Assembly (NCBI GenBank): GCA_028826165.1
Contig: JAPDFW010000055.1
Coordinates: 62,001-126,000 of the forward strand
Source of the DNA: Anaeramoeba ignava BMAN
Taxonomy: Eukaryota > Protista > Anaeramoebae
Reading direction: 5' to 3'
DNA length: 64,000 nucleotides
Shown: positions 16,847 through 40,800 of the stretch, in pieces
Layout of the letters: each line of letters starts with the position of its first letter
How positions within the stretch are numbered: position 1 is the stretch's first letter
Notes under the pieces: generated by a model
What the model saw: the letters and a program-made list of their open reading frames with translations, nothing else
The model's database searches: none
Told to the model about the DNA's origin: nothing
Position numbers and translations under genes: made by a program

Positions 16847-18406
16847 TTAAAAAATTAAGCAATTCGATTTTTTTGGTTTTTGGAAAGTGATTTTCCATTT
16901 TTTTAAATATTCTTCGACTTTTGGATCAACTAATCCTTTTATAGATTCATTGTTTATAATGTTTTTACGAATTTGTGTTGAAGAGATATCTGTTGCATCT
17001 TCAATTCCAATGAAGTAAGTTTTTCTTTTTCTTTTAAGTTGATCTAATTCATTTTCAAGTTTTTCAATTTGATTTTCATTTTTAATTTCATTTTCAATTT
17101 GATTTTGATTTTGATTTTGATTTTGATTTTGATTTTGATTTTCATTTTGATTTTGATTTTCATTTTCATTTTCATTTTGATTTTCATTTTCATTTTGATT
17201 TTGATTTTGAATTTGATTTTGATTTTGATTTTGATTTTGATTTTGATTTTGATTTTGATTTTGATTTTGATTTTGATTTTCAATTTGATTTTGATTTTCA
17301 ATTTCATTTTGATTTTGATTTTGATTTTGATTTTGATTTTGATTTTCATTTTGATTTTGAATTTGATTTTGATTTTGATTTTCATTTTGATTTTTGAATT
17401 TCATTTTGAATTTGATTTTTATTTTGATTTTGATTTTCAATTTGATTTTGATTTTGATTTTGATTTTGATTTTGATTTTCAATTTGATTTTGATTTTGAT
17501 TTTGAATTTGATTTTCAATTTGATTTTGATTTTGATTTTGATTTTCATTTTCATTTTGATTTTCATTTTGATTTTGATTTTCAATTTGATTTTGATTTTC
17601 AATTTGATTTTGATTTTGATTTTGATTTTCATTTTGATTTTGATTTTGATTTTGATTTTGATTTTGATTTTGATTTTGATTTTGATTTTCATTTTCATTT
17701 TGATTTTGATTTTGATTTTGATTTTGATTTTGATTTTGATTTTGATTTTGATTTGGATTTTCTTGTAAATTTTGAATTTGTTCTTCCAATTCCTTAATCC
17801 GAAGTAAATCCTTTTGACAATCAATTTTCATTTGATCAGCAATTTGCGAATGAGGTTCAGAAATAACAGAACCCTTTCTTTCTAAACAAACAACATGAAT
17901 ATTAGGCATTTTTCCATAAGAACGAAACAAATCATTTCCAATAACATATATAAGAATAAGATCTTTAGGGTTATAAAGAAGAGTTTTAGAAATAACACTA
18001 ACTAAATTATCAAAACTTGAAGAGGACTAACAAAATGATCTGAAGTAGCTTCAAATTTATCAATCATAATCCAATTTTCATCTTCAATTGTTAATTCACA
18101 AGTATTGATTCGATGAAAACTTGACATATATTGATCTCCTAATTTTCTGTATACATATAAACAATGTGATGGCGAAATATATCCTGCGATAACATCAAAT
18201 CCTAATGTTTCTTCCACATATTTTTTTGCTTTTTTAAGATTTTCTTTATGACTTATATGAATTGGATTCAAACTTCCTGTTGATAATAATATTGTTGGAT
18301 ATTTTGTTTCTTTTTTCAGTATTTTATTTGTTGGTGTTATGTTGTTTTTAAATGCTTTTCGTGATTCTTCAACATCTTTTTTAACTTTTTTTTCAAATTC
18401 ATCCAT
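16847..18406 (-). CDS. NMNAT: Nicotinamide/nicotinate mononucleotide adenylyltransferase (NMNAT) with a poly-NQ insert and C-terminal CaaX; two apparent 1-nt frameshifts
   Basis: GSLNPIHISH (HxxH), GYISPS, HRINTCEL...WIMIDKFEA, YVIGNDLF, VVCLER and DISSTQIR...GLVDPKVEEYL. Frame changes at ~18013 and ~17392. Confidence 0.85.
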
Positions 18407-18601
18407 TGTTTTTATAAAATTAAAAAAATGGAATAAAAAATGAAAAATGAAAAATTAAAAATGGAATAAAAATAAAAATTTGGAATAAAAATAAAAATTA
18501 AAATTTGGAATAAAAATTAAAATAAAAATAAAATTTAAAATAAAAATTAAAATTTGGAATAAAATATTTTTTCATTTTTTTTATTTTAAATTTTTAAAAA
18601 A

Positions 18602-19255
18602 ATGGAAAAAAATGATAATGAAAATTCAAATGAAATTGATTTGAATTTGGAAGAGAAAAATCAAAAACAAGAATCTATCAAAGTTAATCAAATGGTTTCA
18701 AGTGTTTTTTCAGATTCAGAAATTATTAAAGATATTGAATATGAAAATAAATTAAAAGAATGGATAAATGATAATGATTTTTTTTCTAAAATGAAAAAAG
18801 CATTTTCAGCAAAAAGAGATGGATTTTCATCTGAAAATTGGCATTCAATTTGTGATAATAAAGGAAAAACATTAATTATTATCAAAACAAAAGATAATTT
18901 TATTTTTGGAGGTTTTACTCAAGTTGGATTTAAGAGAAATTCTTATTATATTTCTGATCCAAATCCTTTTATTTTTTCATTAAGAAATGATAAGAATGAT
19001 AGAAAACCAGAAAAATTCCAAATTAAAAAAGGAAAAGAACCAAATGCAATTTATTATCATTTTGGTTCTGGTCCAATTTTTGGAGGAGGTCATGATTTTT
19101 ATTTAAATTCTAATTTAGAAACTGGTGATTCACAATTTGGACATACTTATTATTTACCTAATGGAATTGATTATGATACAAATGAAGCTAAAAGTTATTT
19201 AGCTGGTTCTTATAATAAATGGATTGTTGATGAAATTGAAACTTATTTGATTTAA
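18602..19255 (+). CDS. TLDc-domain-only protein (BTB-less paralogue), intronless
   Basis: AFSAKRDGFS...WHSICDNKGKTLIIIKT...IFGGFT...FIFSL...GPIFGGGHD...YLAGS...VDEIETY is a TLDc core. Confidence 0.9.
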   Translation: MEKNDNENSNEIDLNLEEKNQKQESIKVNQMVSSVFSDSEIIKDIEYENKLKEWINDNDFFSKMKKAFSAKRDGFSSENWHSICDNKGKTLIIIKTKDNFIFGGFTQVGFKRNSYYISDPNPFIFSLRNDKNDRKPEKFQIKKGKEPNAIYYHFGSGPIFGGGHDFYLNSNLETGDSQFGHTYYLPNGIDYDTNEAKSYLAGSYNKWIVDEIETYLI

Positions 19256-20300
19256 AAAATATCAAAATTAAATTTTATTTTCTTTTAATTTCCATCAAAT
19301 AAAATTCTTTAAATCAATGATTAAGAAATAAATCAAATTTGAAATGATTAATTTTTAATTTTAAATTATGATTAAAAATTTAATTAAATCAAAAAAATAA
19401 TAATGAACAAAAATAGAAATTAAAAATAGAAATTAATAATAATTAAATAGAAATTATTTATTAATAGATAAATTTAAACAAATATTAAATGTAATTATTT
19501 ATTAAATTCAATTTTATTTTTGATATTTTGTTAATAAAATTATTTTAAAAAATTTTCAATATATTTTATTATAACTAAAATTGAATTAATAAATAATTAA
19601 AAATATTACTTTAATAAATAAAAATATTATATCAAATTAAAATAAATTAAATCTAAATTAAATTATTATTAAAAATGATTAAAATTGGATTTTTATTTTT
19701 ATTAAAATATTTCAATTATTTTTCAATTTTATTAAATTATTGAGAATAATTTTATATTATTTTAAACAAAGAAAAATTAATAAAATATATAAAATAAAAA
19801 TTAATTTTAAATTTAATTATTTAATATTCTTAATTCCATTTTTGAAATAAATTAATAAAAATATTTTATTTATTTTATTAAATTATTGAGAATAATTTTA
19901 TATTATTTTTAAACAAAGAAAAGTTAATAAAATATATAAAATATAATTAATTTTAAATTTAATTATTTAATATTCTTAATTCCATTTTTGAAATAAATTA
20001 ATAAAAATATTTTATTTATTTTATTAAATTATTGAGAATAATTTTATATTATTTTAAACAAAGAAAAATTAATAAATATATAAAATATAATTAATTTTAA
20101 ATTTAATTATTTAATATTCTTAATTTCATTTTTGAAATAAATTAATTAAAATATTTTATTTATTTTATTAAATTATTGAGAATAATTTTATATTATTTTA
20201 AATAAAGAAAAATTGATAAAATATATAAAATATAATTAATTTTAAATTTAATTATTTAATATTCTTTATTCCATATTTGAAATAAATTAATAAAAAGATT
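19256..20300 (+). repeat. Duplicated ~1-kb spacer (copy 1) containing 4 units of a ~146-bp minisatellite
   Basis: 19256-19730 is nearly identical to 24132-24600. The anchor TGAGAAT occurs at 19741, 19887, 20033 and 20177. Confidence 0.9.
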
Positions 20301-20500
20301 TTATAATTGAAAGAAAAGAAAAACAATATAAATTTCCCAGAATTAATTTCAATTATTTGAATATTATATTTAGAAATCAATTTTAAAGATGAAATTCAAA
20401 TTACTATTAACAAATTATAAATGAATTTCAAATATTTGAATATTGATTTATTCAAATCAAATTAAAGAAGAAATTCAAATTTATTAATTAACAAAATGAA
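20297..20500 (+). pseudogene. Degenerate relic of the 3' end of an RCC1-BTB gene
   Basis: GATTTTATAATTGAAAGAAAAGAAAAACAATATAAATTTCC and TTTCAAATATTTGAATATT..ATTCAAATCAAATTAAAGAAGAAATTC match 22333-22375 and 22483-22540, with deletions and stops. Confidence 0.75.
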
Positions 20501-20841
20501 ATTTCAAATTAAAATTGAAAATTTAAAATTAAATTAAAATTAAAATTCAAATTGAATTGATTTATTAATTAAAACAAAATTAAAATTAAAATTAAAATTA
20601 AAATTAAAATCAAAATCAAAAATTAAAATTAAAATTAAAATTAAAATTAAAATTAAAATTAAAATTAAAATTAAAATCAAAATTAAAATTAAAATTAAAA
20701 TTAAAATTAAAATTAAAATTAAAATTAAAATTAAAATTAAAATTAAAATTAAAATTAAAATTCAAAATTAAAATTAAAATCAAAATTAAAATCAAAATCA
20801 AAAATTCATTTTTTCATTTTTTCATTTTTTTCTTTTTCAAA

Positions 20842-22644
20842 ATGAATGATTGTTTATTTTTTGGAAGAAATAAAGAACCAAAACTTTTCAAAAATAAACC
20901 AGAAAAAATAACAAAACCAATTCAATTTAAATTTGAAAATGAAAATGAAAATGAAAATGAAAATGAAAATGAAAATGAAAATGAAAAACAAATTAAACAA
21001 ATTTCATCAAGTGAATTTTCAACAATTTTCCTTTTTAAAAATGGAAAAGCAATAGAATATTTAAAAGATTCAAATCAAAATCCTCAAAAAATCCAAATTG
21101 AAAATATTCGAAAAGTATCTGTTGGTTATGATAATGAAGCTATTTTAACAATAGAAGGAAATGTATTTGCCAAAGGAAAAGATATTAAACCAAAAAATCC
21201 AAATGAATTTATCAATATTTCATCATTAATTGAAGATACAAATGATAGAATAATTAAAGATATTGTTTCCGGAAGAAATTCAATTTACTTATTAACTTCA
21301 AATCAAAATGCTTATGGAATTGGTTCAAATAAATATTCCCAATTTGGTTTTGATTCTGAAACACTTCCAAAAACAGAAAAACCAATTTTAATAATGAAAA
21401 ATATTTCTAAAATATTTTCAGGAAACAATTCATTTCATATTTTTCTTTTAAATTCAAATCAAGAATTATTTGGATGCGGAGGTAATTTTTATGGTCAACT
21501 TGGATTAGGAGAATCAAGAATAAAAGAAACAGAAATCCATAAATTAACTCAAATCCAAAATATTCCAAAAGGTAAAATAATTGATATTCAATGTGGATAT
21601 TTTCATTCAATAATGTTAATTGAAAATGAAAATGAAAATGAAAATCGAGATGAAAATCCAAAAAGAAAACTTTATTCATGTGGAAATTGGATATATAATG
21701 GACTTGGCAAAAATAAAAATACTTATGAATTTACTGAAATCAAATCATCTTTATTTGAAAATGATGATAATATTCTTGATTTTTCTATTGGACTTGAACA
21801 TAGTTTGATTTTAACTTCAAAAGGGAAACTATTTTCATTTGGAGATAATGTTTTTGGTCAATTAGGAACTGGAGATACAAATGTACAATTAATTCCAATT
21901 CAAATTGAACTTCCTAAATTAAGATTTAATGAAGATATTTCTAATTATCATGTTCTTTGTGGGAGATATAATTCATTTCTTTATTATTCTCCTTCTTTTT
22001 CTAATCTTGAAGAAGATTTGATAAAATTATTTAGAAGAAAAGAATTTTGTAATATTTCATTTAAAACAGAAAATGGAGAAATAATTGAAGCTCATAAATT
22101 AATATTGAAATATAGATTAAATCAAAATCAAAATGAAATTGAAAAACTTCAAGAAATTATTTCAAATAAATCAATTAAAGAATCAAATCAAATATTTGAA
22201 ATGATTTATTCAAACAGAATAATAAATCCAATATTATATTCTGAAATTAAAGAAATTATAAATTTAAATGAAAAAATTGAAGAAACAATGAAAAGAATTT
22301 ATTTAAATGAAAATGAAAATGAAAATGAAAAAGATTTTATAATTGAAAGAAAAGAAAAACAATATAAATTTCCAAAATTAATATTAATAATGAGAAGTGA
22401 ATTATATCGAGGAATGTTTTTATCTGTAACAAATGATACTTCTAATAAAGTTACAGATTATAGTGAATTAAGTAATAAATCATTTCAAATATTTGAATAT
22501 TGGATTTATTCAAATCAAATTAAAGAAGAAATTCAAATTACACAAGAAATTATTAATGAAATTCAAATTGGAATTGATTATTTTCAATTAAATCAAACAA
22601 ATCCAAATTTATTTGATTTATTAATTAAAAAATTTAAAAATTAA
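20842..22644 (+). CDS. RCC1-repeat protein with C-terminal divergent BTB domains, intronless
   Basis: RCC1 blades (GCGGNFYGQLGLG, IQCGYFHS, IGLEHSLILTSKGKLFSFGDNVFGQLGTGD), then BTB-like FCNISF..AHKLIL and DFIIE..FPKLILIMRSELYRGMF..FEYWIYS. Confidence 0.88.
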   Translation: MNDCLFFGRNKEPKLFKNKPEKITKPIQFKFENENENENENENENENEKQIKQISSSEFSTIFLFKNGKAIEYLKDSNQNPQKIQIENIRKVSVGYDNEAILTIEGNVFAKGKDIKPKNPNEFINISSLIEDTNDRIIKDIVSGRNSIYLLTSNQNAYGIGSNKYSQFGFDSETLPKTEKPILIMKNISKIFSGNNSFHIFLLNSNQELFGCGGNFYGQLGLGESRIKETEIHKLTQIQNIPKGKIIDIQCGYFHSIMLIENENENENRDENPKRKLYSCGNWIYNGLGKNKNTYEFTEIKSSLFENDDNILDFSIGLEHSLILTSKGKLFSFGDNVFGQLGTGDTNVQLIPIQIELPKLRFNEDISNYHVLCGRYNSFLYYSPSFSNLEEDLIKLFRRKEFCNISFKTENGEIIEAHKLILKYRLNQNQNEIEKLQEIISNKSIKESNQIFEMIYSNRIINPILYSEIKEIINLNEKIEETMKRIYLNENENENEKDFIIERKEKQYKFPKLILIMRSELYRGMFLSVTNDTSNKVTDYSELSNKSFQIFEYWIYSNQIKEEIQITQEIINEIQIGIDYFQLNQTNPNLFDLLIKKFKN

Positions 22645-22697
22645 AATTAAATTTAAATTTTTTTTTTCATTTTTTTCATTTCAATTTTTTAATTAAA

Positions 22698-24131
22698 ATG
22701 GAAAATTATTCAAATTTAGAAAAACTTTCAAATGATTTAAAAAATTTATTTCAAAACCAAAATCAAAATGAAAAAGAAGAAGAAAGTTATTTTGATTTTG
22801 AAATAATTTGTGAACAAAATAAAACTTCATTTAAAACTCATAAATCAATTCTTTCTTCAAGAAGTGAATATTTTAAATATCTTTTTAATTCTAAAATGAA
22901 AGAATATCAAGAAAATAAATTAATTCTAAAAGATGTTTCAAGTTCAATTATATCTTCAATTTTAAATTATTTTTATTCAGGAAAAATTGAAATTAATTTA
23001 GAAAATGCAATTCAAATTTTGTTTTTTTCATCAAAATATTTAATTGATGAATTAATTGAAATTACTTCAAATTTTATCAAAAACAATTTACGATTTGAGA
23101 CAGTTGTTGATATTCTTAAATTATCTGAAGCAATGAACTTCAATCAATTACTAGATTCTTCTTATCAATTTATTTTAGAAAATTTCAATGAATTTATTAA
23201 AACTCCATTTTTTCTTGAACTTGAAGAAAATCATTTAAATTTAATATTATTAAATCAGGAAACTGAATCAAATGAATTTGAACTTTTCCAATCAATAATA
23301 AAATGGGGAAAACATAAATCAAATATTAATCAAGAAAAAGAATTAGAAAAAGAAGAAAAAGAAAAATTACAAAATCAAATTTCAAATGTTATTAATACAA
23401 TCAGATTTATTGATTTTTCAAACGAAGAACTTCAAGATATTTTGAAAGAAGATTTAATTCCAAATCAAATTTCAAAAAAATTAATTCAATTCCAAAAACT
23501 TCAGAATCAAAAAGAATTTATTGAATTTATTCAAAAAGAAAATCAAAATCAATATTCATTCATTTTCAAATCAAAATTTAAATTTGATTCAACAATTATT
23601 AAAGATATTGAATATGCTAATAAATTACAAGAATGGATAAATAATGATGAATTTTTTTCTAAAATGAAAAAAGGATTTTCAGCAAAAAGAGATGGATTTG
23701 ATTGTAAGAAATGGCATGATATTTGCGATAATAAAGGAAAAACATTAATTATTATCAAAACAAAAGATAACTTTATTTTTGGAGGATTTACTCAAGTTGG
23801 ATGGATTAAACCAAATTCAGGCCAATGGATTTTAGATCCAAATGCATTTATTTTTTCATTAAGAAATGATAAGAATGATAGAAAACCAGAAAAATTCTCA
23901 ATCAAACAAAGTCGGGAAAAATATGCAATTTGGTATAATTTAAATGCAGGTCCTTTATTTGGAGGTGGTGATATTTATTTAAATTCTAATTTAGAAACTG
24001 GTTATGCAAACTTTGGCAATACTTATCATTTGCCCAATGGAATCAAATATGGAACAAATATAGCTGAAAGTTATTTAGCTGGCTCCAAAAATAAATGGAT
24101 TGTTGATGAAATTGAAACTTATTTCATTTAA
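22698..24131 (+). CDS. BTB-BACK-TLDc protein, copy A, intronless
   Basis: BTB (DFEIIC..FKTHKSILSSRSEYFKYLF..ILNYFYSGKI), BACK (FLELEE..EFELFQSIIKWG..IRF) and a C-terminal TLDc domain. Confidence 0.92.
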   Translation: MENYSNLEKLSNDLKNLFQNQNQNEKEEESYFDFEIICEQNKTSFKTHKSILSSRSEYFKYLFNSKMKEYQENKLILKDVSSSIISSILNYFYSGKIEINLENAIQILFFSSKYLIDELIEITSNFIKNNLRFETVVDILKLSEAMNFNQLLDSSYQFILENFNEFIKTPFFLELEENHLNLILLNQETESNEFELFQSIIKWGKHKSNINQEKELEKEEKEKLQNQISNVINTIRFIDFSNEELQDILKEDLIPNQISKKLIQFQKLQNQKEFIEFIQKENQNQYSFIFKSKFKFDSTIIKDIEYANKLQEWINNDEFFSKMKKGFSAKRDGFDCKKWHDICDNKGKTLIIIKTKDNFIFGGFTQVGWIKPNSGQWILDPNAFIFSLRNDKNDRKPEKFSIKQSREKYAIWYNLNAGPLFGGGDIYLNSNLETGYANFGNTYHLPNGIKYGTNIAESYLAGSKNKWIVDEIETYFI

Positions 24132-24890
24132 AAAATATCAAAATTAAATTTTATTTTCTTTTAATTTCCATCAAATAAAATTCTTTAAATCAATGATTAA
24201 GAAATAAATCAAATTTGAAATGATTAATTTTTAATTTTAAATTATGATTAAAAATTTAATTAAATTAAAAAAATAATAATGAACAAAAATAGAAATTAAA
24301 AATAGAAATTAATAATAATTAAATAGAAATTATTTATTAATAGATAAATTTAAACAAATATTAAATGTAATTATTTATTAAATTCAATTTTATTTTTTGA
24401 TATTTTGTTAATAAAATTATTTTAAAAATTTTCAATATATTTTATTATAATTAAAATTGAATTAATAAATAATTAAAAATATTACTTTAATAAATAAAAA
24501 TATTATATCAAATTAAAATAAATTAAATCTAAATTAATTTATTATTAAAAATTATTAAAATTGAATTTTTATTTTTATTAAAATATTTCAATTATTTTTC
24601 AATTTTATTAAATTATTTAGAATAATTTTATATTATTTTAAACAAAAGAAAAGTTAATAAAATATATAAAATATAATTAATTTTAAATTTAATTATTTAA
24701 TATTCTTAATTCCATTTTTGAAATAAATTAATAAAAATATTTTATTTATTTTATTAAATTATTGAGAATAATTTTATATTATTTTAAATAAAGAAAAATT
24801 GATAAAATATATAAAATATAATTAATTTTAAATTTAATTATTTAATATTCTTAATTCCATTTTTGAAATAAATTAATTAAAATATTTTAT
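24132..24890 (+). repeat. Duplicated spacer (copy 2) with 2 units of the ~146-bp minisatellite
   Basis: Near-identical to 19256-20020. Unit anchors at ~24617 and 24763. Confidence 0.9.
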
Positions 24891-24892
24891 TA

Positions 24893-25185
24893 ATGAAAGA
24901 AAAGAAAAACAATATAAATTTCCCAGAATTAATATTAAAAATCATAATTAAATTATAATTAGAAATATTTTTTTATTATTAATTACTATTAATTACTATT
25001 AATATTTTATAAATAATTTCAAATATTTGAATATTGGATTTATTCAAATCAAATTAAAGATGAAATTCAAATTACACAAGAAATAATTGATGAAATTCAA
25101 ATTGGAATTGATTATTTTCAATTAAATCAAACAAATCCAAATTTATTTGATTTATTAATTAAAAAATTTAATAATCAAAATTAAA
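24893..25185 (+). pseudogene. Truncated relic of an RCC1-BTB gene 3' end
   Basis: 25017-25170 is almost identical to 22483-22640 (FQIFEYWIYSNQIK..QIGIDYFQLNQTNPNLFDLLIKKF). The upstream part is eroded and has no start. Confidence 0.8.
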
Positions 25186-25231
25186 TTTAAATTTTTTTTT
25201 TCATTTTTTTCATTTCAATTTTTTAATTAAA

Positions 25232-26737
25232 ATGGAAAATTATTCAAATTTAGAAAAACTTTCAAATGATTTAAAAAATTTATTTCAAAATCAAAATCAA
25301 AATGAAAAAGAAGAAGAAAGTTATTTTGATTTTGAAATAATTTGTGAACAAAATAAAACTTCATTTAAAACTCATAAATCAATTCTTTCTTCAAGAAGTG
25401 AATATTTTAAATCTCTTTTTAAATCAAAAATGAAAGAATATCAAGAAAATAAATTAATTCTAAAAGATGTTTCAAGTTCAATTTTATTCTCAATTTTGAA
25501 TTATTTTTATTCAGGAAAAATTGAAATTAATTTAGAAAATGCAATTCAAATTTTGTTTTTTTCATCAAAATATTTAATTGATGAATTAATTGAAATTACT
25601 TCAAATTTTATCAAAAACAATTTACGATTTGAGACAGTTGTTGATATTCTTAAATTATCTGAAGCAATGAACTTCAATCAATTAATAGATTCTTCTTATC
25701 AATTTATTTTTGATAATTTTAATGAATTTATTAAAACTTCATTTTTTCTTGAACTTGAAGAAAATCATTTAAATTTAATATTATTAAATGAAATAATTGA
25801 ACCAAATGAATTTGAGCTTTTCCAATCAATAATAAAATGGGGAAAACATAAATCAAATATTAATCAAGAAAAAGAATTAGAAAAAGAAGAAAAAGAAAAA
25901 TTACAAAATCAAATTTCAAATATTATTAATAAAATCAGATTTATTGATTTTACAAAAAAAGAACTTCAAGATATTTTGAAAGAAGATTTAATTCCAAATC
26001 AAATTTCAAAAAAATTAATTCAATTCCAAAAACTTCAAAATCAAAACGATAAAGAAAATGAAAAAAAAAATGAAAAAAAATTAAAAAGATTTATTCAAAA
26101 AGAAAATCGAAATCAAAATTCATTAATTTTCCAACCAAGATTTAAATTAGATTCAAAAATAATTAAAGAAATTGGACATTTTAATAAATTAAAAGAATGG
26201 ATAAATAATGACGAATTTTTTTCCAAAATGAAAAAAGGATTTTCAGCAAAAAGAGATGGATTTGATTGTAAGAAATGGCATGATATTTGCGATAATAAAG
26301 GAAAAACATTGGTTATTATTAAAACAAAAGATAACTTTATTTTTGGGGGATTTACTCAAATTGGATTTACAAATAATAAGTTAACATGGAGAAATCAAGA
26401 TAGAGAAGATTATCGTGGGTGGATTAGAGATCCAAATGCATTTATTTTTTCATTAAGAAATAATAAGAATAATAGAAAATCAGAGAAATTTAAAATCAGG
26501 CAAATTGAAGAAGAATATGCAATTTTTTATGATTATTCAAGTTACGGTCCAAATTTTGGTCATGGAAATAATGCAGATTTTTATTTAAATTCAAAATTAC
26601 AATCTGGTAATTCAAATTTTGGTTATACTTATCATTTGCCTAATAGAATTAAACCATATTCAAATGAATCTCAAACATATTTAGCTGGTTCTTTTAGATC
26701 ATGGAAAGTTGATGAACTTGAGACTTTTTTCATTTGA
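25232..26737 (+). CDS. BTB-BACK-TLDc protein, copy B, intronless
   Basis: BTB-BACK is nearly identical to copy A. The TLDc domain has longer and different variable loops. Confidence 0.92.
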   Translation: MENYSNLEKLSNDLKNLFQNQNQNEKEEESYFDFEIICEQNKTSFKTHKSILSSRSEYFKSLFKSKMKEYQENKLILKDVSSSILFSILNYFYSGKIEINLENAIQILFFSSKYLIDELIEITSNFIKNNLRFETVVDILKLSEAMNFNQLIDSSYQFIFDNFNEFIKTSFFLELEENHLNLILLNEIIEPNEFELFQSIIKWGKHKSNINQEKELEKEEKEKLQNQISNIINKIRFIDFTKKELQDILKEDLIPNQISKKLIQFQKLQNQNDKENEKKNEKKLKRFIQKENRNQNSLIFQPRFKLDSKIIKEIGHFNKLKEWINNDEFFSKMKKGFSAKRDGFDCKKWHDICDNKGKTLVIIKTKDNFIFGGFTQIGFTNNKLTWRNQDREDYRGWIRDPNAFIFSLRNNKNNRKSEKFKIRQIEEEYAIFYDYSSYGPNFGHGNNADFYLNSKLQSGNSNFGYTYHLPNRIKPYSNESQTYLAGSFRSWKVDELETFFI

Positions 26738-37857: not shown

Positions 37858-40800
37858 TTAATTTTGATTTTCTTGGTTTGGAATTTCTTCAATTTCGATA
37901 TCATCAATATCATCAATATCATCAATATCATCAATATCATCAATATCTTCGATTTCTTGTTTATTTTCTTGTTTATTTTCTTCTTGTTTATTTTCTTCTT
38001 GTTTTTCTTCTTGATTTTCTTCTGATTCTGAAATTACTTTTCTCTTTTTTGTTCTTGGTTTTTTCTTAGTCTTCTTTTTATTCTTTTTATTCGTTTTATT
38101 CTTCTTATTAATTTTTTTCTTTTTCATCTTTTTATTCTTCGTTGATTTTTTTGTTTTAGATTTTTGTTTTAAATTTTCATTTTGATTTTCATTTAAATTT
38201 TCATTTTGATTTTCATTTTGATTTTCATTTTGATTTTCATTTTGATTTTCATTTAAATTTTCCTTTAAATTTTCCTTTAAATTTTCGTCTTCATCTAAAT
38301 TATCTTCATCAAACATTTTGGAAAACTCATTATCACTTTCATCATCAACATTCTCCAAATAAAGACCTTCATCCTTTCCAGATTTATTTTCATTATTTGG
38401 ATTATTCATAAGAGATTGAAATTTCTCTTGATTTTCAATTAAAATCTGTTGGTAGAACTTTTGTTTTTCAATTTCCTTTCTTTCCAAGTCTTGTTTAATC
38501 TTAAGCTGCTCCATTTTTTCATTCTCAGAACGAATACGCCGAGAAATAATCTCTTCTTGACGGAGTCTAAACCTCTCCTGAACATCGAGAAATTTCTTAT
38601 GAGCATTAGTGATGAAAGCTCGAGCTTGGTCCTCTTGGGAAAGAAGAAAATCATGAGCGTCTTGCGTATCAAGATGGACGCGCATATAAGTGAATATTCT
38701 GAAGGATTGCTGGAATAATTTCTCGGCGAGACGAGCATCGTCGGGACTGAGGTTTCGATCTTCAAGAGGGTTTTTATCTGGAAGAATGGAGAGAGCATGA
38801 GATCTGGACACTGAGGCAAGACCCCACCATCCCACACGACTGCGCGGGTCGAGACGCAGAAGGTGCTGGAATGTGCTTGATGCTTCTGTGTATGTTTTTG
38901 CGCGCAGTTGGGCGCGACCGAGACAGCCGAGAAGTTCTGCGTTTGGGGCGGAGTCTCGGATGCAAGCTGAGTAAAGTTTAATTGCCTGTGTGTATTTCTG
39001 ATCCAAAAGTAGGAAATGTGCGTGAGTTAAACGCGCGTCTGGGAAGTTATGTGATGCCTCGTGAATTTCCGTGATGATCTTGCGCGCCTCATCGTCTCGT
39101 TGTTTATCTGCAAGACAGAGGGCAATTCCATGTGCTGCATACACATTCGAGGGCTGCAATACAAGCGCCTCTTTGTAAAGCTTCATCGCCTTATTTATCT
39201 GACGATCGAAGTTTGCAAGAGTGATGTCTCTAAGTGGGTCCGATCTTGCTTGGATTCGTAAAAGATTTCCCAACGCCACAAGCACATATCCCGAGCGCTG
39301 TTTGTTTCTCGGATCCTTTCTTGCTCGCTCTAACAGACCCATCGCACTCTTCAGATCCCCCTGCGTTCCTTTCTTCATGTGGAGATATGCTAATTGTATC
39401 AGCGCACTTGTGTTTTCTTTATCTCCTGATAAAATCTTCTGATAATGTCTACTTGCTTCCAAAATATCCCCCACTTTTTCACAAATGACCCCCAATCTTA
39501 AATGGCAATCTACATATGAAGGGTGCTTCTCCAGGATCTCCTTGTAGATCTTCTCCGCCTCTCTTGTTCTTGATTCCTCCTCCAATCCTCTTCCTTGGTT
39601 GTACCGGATCGTCGTCTCGTTTTCTTCGTTGCTTAATTTCTCAGCTTCTGAATACGCTGATTTGCTCCCTTCATAATCTCCCCCTTGATTTGTCGTAATG
39701 TCCCTATGTTGTTCCATATTTCAACCCCGATTTTTATCCCCCATTTTTCGTATAATCCTTTAAGTTTGCTATATGTTTTTAGTGATTTTTCTCTTTCTGT
39801 TTTTTCGTAAAGTATTGCTAGTTGATGTAGTGCTTCTATGTCGTAGTGATTTTCTTGTACTACTTTTTCTAGGCATTCTTGTGCTTTTTCGTTTTTTTTT
39901 TGTTTGATGTAGAGCATTCCGAGGATCTTTTATTAATATTAATTTTTTATCCGATTTTAATTTTTTATCCGATTTTAATTTTAATATTAATTTTAAATTT
40001 AATTTTATAAATGAATTTTAATTATAATTTTAAATTTAATTTTTAATTTTAATTTTTTAAATTTTAATTTTAATTTTAAATTTAATTTTAATTTTTAATT
40101 TTAATTTTGATTTTAATATTAATATTAATTTTAATTTTAATTTTAATTTTAATTTTAATTATAATTTTAATTATAATTATAATTTTAATTTTAATTTTAA
40201 TTTTAATTTTTAATTTGAATTTTAATTTTAATTTTAATTTTAATTTTAATTTTAATTTTAATTTTAATTTTAATTTTAATTTTAATTTTAATTTTAATTT
40301 TTAATTTTTAATTTTAATTTTAATTTTGATTTTAATTTTAATTTTAATTTTAATTTTAATTTTAATTTTAATTTTAATTTTTATTTTGAATTTAATTTTA
40401 ATTTTTTATAAATGAATTTTAATTTTAATTTTAATTTTAATTTTGATTTTGAATTTTAATTTTAATTTTAATTTTAATTTTAATTTTAATTTTAATTTTA
40501 ATTTTAATTTTAATTTTAATTTTTAATATTAAATTTTAATTTTATAAATGAATTTTAATTTTTAATACCTTCAATGTCTCATAATTATGTGGCAAATGGA
40601 ATCGCACTTTCTCAAATTCTTGTACAGCACCACTATAATCTCTCTCATGTAACAAAGTTTGTGCTAACCCAAAGCGTGCAGGAAAATGTCTAACCCAAAT
40701 TTTCAAAGTTTCTTGATAATATTGTTTTGCTAAAGAAAATTGTCGCTAAAAAAATAATCAATTTTTAATTTTTTATCCGATTTTTAATTTTAATTTTAAT

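Follow-up and report, generated by a model that had tools for sequence, protein, structure and literature searches.

Hypervariable TLDc loops beside a conserved BTB-BACK module in a large gene family of Anaeramoeba ignava

How do neighboring genes come to be nearly identical over one half of their length and to differ, in a few discrete blocks, over the other? The question is raised by three genes, here called A, B, and C, in a 64,000-nucleotide (nt) stretch of the Anaeramoeba ignava genome that was analyzed as a whole (the window, contig C56:62001-126000 in a 42.8-Mb, very A+T-rich assembly; the genome is 80% A+T). A first-pass annotation had proposed that the TLDc domains encoded here carry hypervariable, aromatic-rich loops on a near-invariant framework and are attached to Cullin-3 (Cul3)-type adaptors, resembling an immune-like ubiquitin-ligase repertoire. 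We find that the genes belong to a BTB-BACK-TLDc family of several hundred genes, which also includes BTB-less, TLDc-only derivatives such as A. With moderate confidence, we lean toward reading this family as a germline repertoire of probable Cul3 substrate adaptors in which TLDc is the variable receptor, built by birth-and-death duplication, loop insertions and deletions (indels), and recombination.

Genes B (22698-24131, + strand, 477 amino acids) and C (25232-26737, + strand, 501 amino acids) show the full architecture. Pfam places BTB at 22773-23087, BACK at 23106-23327 and, after a linker, TLDc at 23586-24116 in B; the same domains lie at 25307-25621, 25640-25861, and 26156-26641 in C. 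BTB was recognized in B and C with E values of 7e-21 and 4e-21, and BACK with 1e-11 and 4e-11. Gene A (18602-19255, + strand) has neither and is a TLDc-only open reading frame (ORF) of 217 amino acids, with TLDc at 18713-19165 (Pfam TLD, E 5.3e-22). Measured against the TLDc model PF07534, whose gathering cutoff is 24.5 bits, A, B, and C scored 79, 74, and 55 bits (E 5e-22, 2e-20, and 1e-14). All three ORFs are uninterrupted and identical to the proteins and gene models deposited at NCBI. The framework motifs and loop strings that the first-pass annotation had quoted are all present, with loop 1 starting at 18929 in A, 23802 in B, and 26366 in C. By motif coordinates, loops 2, 3, and 4 of A start at 19052, 19118, and 19163 (+ strand). 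Loop 1 of B (23802-23834, + strand, codons 369-379) is hypervariable in sequence and length as judged by column entropy, and that of C is a long form of 21 amino acids. Loops 2 to 4 of B (23931-23975, 23994-24026, and 24039-24071, + strand) lie inside the C-terminal part of TLDc at 23907-24131 (+ strand, codons 404-477), which is deeply diverged, synonymous sites included, and which we call the C-terminal island. Near-identity of BTB-BACK between copies, as first described, is true of B and C, where 215 codons hold 12 nonsynonymous and five synonymous differences; it does not apply to A, in which BTB-BACK is absent.

Whether so few genes can say anything about diversification depends on how many relatives they have. 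Searched in six frames with the TLDc model, the genome yielded 556 candidates, and all 150 that were scored passed the cutoff; a small family, which would have told against the original proposal, is thus not what genome-wide collection returned. Searching with protein B gave 1177 candidates, and about 85 of the 89 that were scored are close intronless copies, 68-83% identical and spanning the protein in full or in large part. The majority of these ~85 are uninterrupted over their full length, and 83 of the 89 scored contain no internal stop. At least 65 TLDc-only proteins, gene A's product among them, are annotated in A. ignava. When 10 full-length relatives spanning 51% to 24% identity were sampled from a library clustered at 50%, eight came from A. 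ignava (the lowest at 29%), and the other two were contig sequences at 30% and 24% identity. Among the matches listed, the closest protein relatives of A, B, and C are all from A. ignava, and the relatives listed in the family searches include no A. flamelloides protein. Across sampled and listed relatives, the family therefore appears, by sequence comparison, almost only in A. ignava.

Larger arrangements of the same domain also occur. A single open frame of 870 amino acids at C104:866780-868927 holds four tandem TLDc domains, and library relatives of 1281-6157 amino acids hold up to eight TLDc-like stretches.

We then asked where members of the family differ. All codon work rests on an alignment of 57 full-length intronless paralogues, B and C included, out of the several hundred copies. 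In this alignment BTB-BACK shows almost no column entropy, and the peaks fall in separate TLDc blocks that match the loops of A, B, and C, so the blocks first noticed are not an accident of comparing three sequences. Loop 1 was distinct in 180 of 186 family proteins and ranged from 9 to 43 residues, with a short class of 9-12 and a long class of 18-25 amino acids; for loop 2, 131 of 133 sequences were distinct. The aromatic-rich character attributed to the variable blocks was also borne out. At the 16 most variable sites Tyr makes up 14.1% of residues (3.9% elsewhere), Ser 15.7% (6.6%), Trp 3.7% (2.0%), and Arg 5.6% (2.4%), and Lys and Ile are depleted. Such gains and losses are not expected from AT mutation pressure alone, and the composition resembles a binding site (it is paratope-like) more closely than it resembles AT-driven drift. 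The family is thus a large, lineage-specific expansion whose variation is concentrated in the presumed substrate-binding domain, the pattern looked for in an adaptor repertoire.

What the two halves of the protein might do was approached through their predicted fold. The AlphaFold2 model of B has a mean predicted local distance difference test (pLDDT) score of 77, rising above 90 in the TLDc part. Foldseek with this part returned 4acj, 7obp, 8ar6, 6r82, and 7fde as top matches, at target-normalized template modeling (TM) scores of 0.69-0.82 for isolated domains, with 4acj and 7obp at ~0.8; it matches the solved TLDc structures of Oxr2, NCOA7, Skywalker, mEAK-7, and Oxr1p and so has the TLDc fold. 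The front half of B matched the Cul3 adaptors KLHL11, KLHL22, and KBTBD2 in Foldseek, and phmmer aligned its BTB-BACK to KLHL22 (5e-15) and KLHL11 (1e-13). The BTB alpha3-beta4 loop of Cul3 adaptors reportedly carries a phi-x-E motif. In B, M67-K68-E69 aligns to L-K-E of KLHL22 and F-S-E of KLHL11, and each of the three residues is at least 90% conserved in 93 paralogues. The genome itself contains 18 above-cutoff matches to the cullin family, spread over about nine loci; several of these matches are exon fragments of a single gene. The BTB-BACK half thus looks like the Cul3-binding part of KLHL/KBTBD-type substrate adaptors, and from sequence and model we infer that it would bind Cul3. The designation as Cul3-type adaptors accordingly suits B and C, with their BTB-BACK like that of solved adaptors and their M-K-E, and does not suit A, which is TLDc-only.

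Binding to the V-ATPase has been proposed as a class property of TLDc proteins, and the family was therefore also compared with members whose contacts are known. Searching the PDB with the single TLDc sequence of B gave no real match, and a 26-sequence profile of diverse family TLDc domains was used for the alignment to canonical TLDc proteins. The profile aligns over its first ~100 positions only; the C-terminal half is no longer alignable by sequence. Within the alignable part, the invariant RDGF motif falls on Gly276 and His277 of mEAK-7, which contact V-ATPase subunit B, and loop 1 falls on the mEAK-7 loop with Pro316 and Gln317, which contact subunit A. We count it as support that loop 1, through the V-ATPase contact of its aligned mEAK-7 loop, would lie on a binding face.

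The two halves of the gene also differ in their history. Synonymous diversity at codons with invariant amino acids was 0.057 in BTB-BACK and 0.162 in TLDc, rising toward the 3' end, and when standardized by amino acid and expressed relative to BTB-BACK it reached 1.55 in the linker, 2.13 in the first half of TLDc, and 3.08 in the second. Distance matrices of four gene regions correlated poorly with one another (r 0.14-0.44). In several close or tandem pairs, divergence is 1-4% as far as codon ~390-405 and 21-25% from there on, and synonymous differences in close pairs jump at that point from 0-0.04 to 0.15-0.32. The same pattern is seen between B and C, with nucleotide identity at 93% between a point 98 nt before the ATG and loop 1 and at 75% beyond, the segment of similarity ending at 23802. 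For the C-terminal island of gene B the best genome match is gene A, at 79% nucleotide identity, and the best match of the last 240 nt of gene C is likewise at 79%. Nothing in the assembly exceeds 79-84% identity to the variable ends of B and C, which are therefore old unique sequences and not recent imports from an existing donor. Mutagenic retrohoming of the kind known from diversity-generating retroelements, hypermutation, and cassette conversion from silent donors were considered and rejected, since there was neither a near-identical donor nor a biased spectrum; the A-B, A-C, and B-C differences are spread across all substitution types and are not adenine-specific.

Downstream of the coding sequence the pattern reverses, and the copies become alike again. 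Gene A is followed, directly from its stop codon, by an AT-rich element at 19256-20304 (+ strand) that includes a 145/146-nt tandem array at 19726-20304, and gene B by an element at 24132-24891 (+ strand), also from the stop codon, with a 145-nt tandem array at 24602-24891. The two flanks are 97.8% identical over 763 nt, whereas TLDc coding sequences of A and B are only 85% identical, differing at 12 synonymous-only and 41 nonsynonymous codons. By inspection of coordinates, at least 24 other TLDc genes are closely followed, on their own strand, by a copy of the flank with 83-87% identity, and the element may be part of the unit that is copied as the family grows. That A and B coding sequence evolved seven times faster than the flank is not the simplest explanation of this contrast, as the flank is a repeat found at 83-87% at other members and 85% coding identity is ordinary for the family. 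Recent local homogenization of the flank explains the A-B contrast better. More generally, the pattern is most simply explained by local homogenization of the similar sequence on either side, with conversion halting at the diverged C-terminal TLDc island. Homogenization that leaves such an island fits both selection against loss of diversity and a mechanical barrier formed by closely spaced, drifting loops.

Because the first-pass annotation had suggested diversifying selection on the loops, we compared nonsynonymous and synonymous rates (omega, or dN/dS). Nei-Gojobori ratios of 0.6-0.8 were set aside because synonymous sites are overcounted in an 80% A+T genome, and maximum likelihood with F3x4 codon frequencies was used instead. 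Under M0, omega was 0.25 for TLDc and 0.27 for BTB-BACK. Site models were fitted with our own codon-likelihood code, which matches the IQ-TREE likelihood exactly, with branch lengths fixed up to one scale factor. For the whole TLDc domain, M2a beat M1a and M8 beat M8a, with twice the log-likelihood difference (2*dlnL) at 18.9 and omega 1.36 for 12% of sites. The halves of TLDc differ in history and synonymous rate; this result was therefore not accepted as such, and the halves were run separately. The first 107 TLDc codons alone gave omega 2.0 for 5.5% of sites (M8 against M8a, 2*dlnL 32.5) at codons 307, 321, 341, 374, 377, and 379, the last three of which are in loop 1. Some recombination breakpoints fall exactly at loop 1, and they can mimic omega above 1, so recombination there could produce the signal of the first half. 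Run by halves, the site models give a signal in the first half of TLDc (omega ~2 at ~6 sites) and none in the C-terminal half, which carries loops 2 to 4. A site test with site-specific dS placed 96 of 181 TLDc codons under purifying selection (p<0.1). Eight young pairs, compared region by region with a shared synonymous distance, gave omega values of 0.19 (BTB-BACK), 0.47 (linker), 0.36 (framework of the first half), 0.38 (loop 1), 0.54 (framework of the second half), and 0.83 (loops 2 to 4), the last not different from 1. BTB-BACK and the TLDc scaffold are under purifying selection.

The TLDc half is a conserved, beta-rich scaffold with four to five separate blocks, and in these almost every copy departs from the others in sequence and length. 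If the family is a repertoire of adaptors, as we are inclined to believe, each copy would present a different binding surface to one shared ubiquitination machine. The diversity would arise from gene duplication, loop indels, and loop substitutions accruing near the neutral rate. Recombination or gene conversion would repeatedly make copies uniform in the 5' portion of the gene and in the 3' flank with its satellite, and the last ~75 TLDc codons would persist as an island of old divergence. Several observations weigh against an adaptor repertoire. Six of the 89 scored copies have in-frame stops, a transcriptome-derived (EukProt) counterpart was found for only one of ~190 listed family proteins, and the sequencing runs listed for the organism include none of RNA that could speak for expression of A, B, and C. 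The genes travel with a repeated satellite module, which fits selfish amplification too. The last 74 codons, analyzed on their own tree, yielded no class with omega above 1 (dlnL ~0 for M8 against M8a and 0.4 for M2a against M1a), the FEL-type test with site-specific dS detected no positively selected site in any loop, and the loop blocks, scaled by their own synonymous rate, had an omega of 0.26, equal to that of the framework. A dN/dS at or below 1 had been named beforehand as the mark of neutral loop drift, and with these values and the 0.83 of young pairs, the proposal of diversifying selection mostly fails on its own terms. Taken as a whole, the tests are mixed and mostly negative and do not demonstrate positive selection, and the loops change at roughly the neutral rate. 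Such results would be expected if the diversity were a neutral by-product without function, in which a gene-plus-satellite module has recently been amplified by recombination-based or selfish copying and unconstrained loops drift. The scaffold would then be kept because misfolding is harmful or because copies are young, and the island would mark where drifting loops break homology and block gene conversion. Loop omega at or below 1, synonymous divergence of the island as expected for sequence escaping homogenization, the repeated 3' element linked to at least 24 other TLDc genes, young duplicates with raised omega everywhere (0.36-0.54 outside BTB-BACK), the presence of some pseudogenes, and the scant transcript evidence are all in keeping with this explanation. 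It is less easily reconciled with 83 of 89 scored copies being intact despite a family-wide synonymous divergence of ~0.12-0.34, with strong purifying selection at 96 of 181 TLDc codons, with unique loops in nearly every copy, and with the enrichment of Tyr, Ser, Trp, and Arg and depletion of Lys and Ile at variable sites, which is the opposite of AT-driven drift. We regard it as a serious possibility, although an unlikely one.

The same tests bear on the idea of an immune-like arms race, in which loops would be positively selected against foreign, prey, viral, or symbiont proteins that are then ubiquitinated. M8 outperforms M8a for whole TLDc (omega 1.36) and for the first half alone (omega 2.0), young pairs show ~54 nonsynonymous against five synonymous codon changes in their last 79 codons, and composition at the variable sites is paratope-like. 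Desulfobacteraceae symbionts live in the host (PMC11550330), and TLD domains are also expanded in Glomeromycotina, with as many as 400 copies (PMC10079182). The whole-TLDc signal, however, is lost when the C-terminal half is given its own tree, no site in any loop is positive once dS is site-specific, omega for loops 2 to 4 in young pairs (0.83) does not differ from 1, and breakpoints at loop 1 can mimic the excess in the first half; we therefore think an arms race quite improbable. A bolder extension would treat the last ~75 codons as an exchangeable recognition cassette held between two homogenized recombination substrates; on the upstream side this would be BTB-BACK together with the first half of TLDc, and on the downstream side the element with the 145-nt satellite. 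Germline shuffling would then build and preserve a combinatorial ubiquitin-ligase repertoire for distinguishing or policing bacterial symbionts, prey, or viruses, convergent with the TLD expansion of arbuscular mycorrhizal fungi. We offer this as a speculation that is probably wrong. At the conventional end of the range, all copies might bind V-ATPase like OXR1, NCOA7, and mEAK-7 and tune or ubiquitinate it on many endomembrane compartments. The TLDc fold does match V-ATPase-bound TLDc proteins, RDGF does align to the subunit B contacts Gly276 and His277 of mEAK-7, and membrane-trafficking families are expanded in Anaeramoeba (PMC11550330). Yet a single conserved target sits poorly with hundreds of copies that differ precisely in loop 1, the loop aligned to the V-ATPase contact of mEAK-7, and the C-terminal TLDc half cannot be aligned to canonical TLDc beyond profile position ~100; we consider this role very improbable. 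The repertoire of probable Cul3 substrate adaptors thus remains the reading that we favor.

The surroundings of the three genes hold a further BTB gene. Between A and B lies an unrelated RCC1-BTB gene (20842-22644, + strand, 600 amino acids; Pfam RCC1-like domain 1.6e-62, BTB 1.3e-07) in which the RCC1 propeller comes first and BTB last, and which ends 53 nt before the start codon of gene B. Judged from its domains, it is a different, second type of putative BTB adaptor architecture within the A-B-C cluster. Genome-wide, the BTB Pfam model gave 3711 first-look candidates, which is not a gene count, and all 150 that were scored exceeded 75 bits; BTB proteins may be one of the largest gene families in the A. 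ignava genome. A TTTTTTCATTTTTTTCATTT-like motif occurs within ~40 nt upstream of the ATG of A, the RCC1-BTB gene, B, and C (18570-18600, 20805-20830, 22660-22697, and 25195-25231) and also precedes one tandem paralogue elsewhere (L072). It is probably a general core-promoter or leader motif of A. ignava.

Elsewhere in the window, a 618-amino-acid TPR protein that matches bacterial-type TPR families is encoded at 37858-39717 (- strand). This is the sole GC-rich stretch of the window (37% G+C, against 5-25%), and the gene is a candidate for lateral gene transfer. A cytidylyltransferase-like first exon at 18002-18406 (- strand) is followed at 16847-17930 (- strand) by long low-complexity repeats of Asn/Gln/Glu and Lys/Ile that are open in several frames.

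Has such a family been described before? The main text of the A. ignava genome paper contains no mention of TLD, BTB, or ubiquitin, and, in the supplements that were searched, there is one unrelated BTB family row. The nearest parallels in organization are the MATH-BTB and F-box adaptors of nematodes and plants, large, unstable, lineage-specific cullin-adaptor families that have been suggested, from indirect evidence, to serve in pathogen defense (Thomas 2006, Genome Res 16:1017, cited in PMC1866355). As described there, they share with the A. ignava family a constant cullin-binding module, a varying substrate-binding domain, and lineage-specific expansion. They differ in that the variable domain here is TLDc and not MATH or FBA, that the host is a metamonad amoeba, and that the variation takes the form of a C-terminal island bounded by recombination. 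Their reported hallmark in that account is positive selection, which is not robustly detected in the A. ignava family. KLHL11, KLHL22, and KBTBD2 (4ap2, 8khp, and 8h37) resemble B and C in BTB-BACK sequence and predicted fold, in phi-x-E (here M-K-E), and in having a C-terminal beta-rich domain in the receptor position, but TLDc stands here in place of the Kelch propeller, and Cul3 binding is predicted. With OXR1, NCOA7, mEAK-7, and TBC1D24 the family shares the TLDc fold (TM ~0.7-0.8) and a conserved N-terminal half that includes the G-x motif touching V-ATPase subunit B in mEAK-7. Those proteins are low-copy and their TLDc binds V-ATPase, whereas A. ignava has hundreds of copies with hypervariable loops and an unalignable C-terminal half.

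Expansion of TLD itself has a precedent in the Glomeromycotina (arbuscular mycorrhizal fungi), in which up to 400 copies, reported as a domain count, have been read as protection against oxidative stress (PMC10079182). The ESM Atlas includes BTB+TLD(+BACK) clusters from Mucoromycota, Arthropoda, and Cnidaria, and A. ignava is thus not alone in having this architecture. The fungal case is similar in its domain, in hundreds of copies, in a lineage living in intimate symbiosis and, according to the Atlas, in the BTB-TLDc architecture. It differs in that loop hypervariability, mosaicism, and an adaptor reading are not described in PMC10079182, and the likeness is one of description. What is new here is a hypervariable, paratope-like TLDc face on a constant, putative adaptor module, its recombination-bounded island, and the occurrence of both in a metamonad amoeba.

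These genes are a clean natural case of recombination keeping one part of a gene family uniform next to an island that stays diverse, and they also show how such a structure can lead standard site models to signal positive selection falsely. Should the copies prove to be expressed and to bind different targets, TLDc would rank with the MATH, F-box-associated, leucine-rich repeat, and immunoglobulin-like domains as a scaffold that evolution has made into a variable binder. In that case, a free-living protist with symbionts would be committing an appreciable part of its gene set to a recognition repertoire based on ubiquitin.

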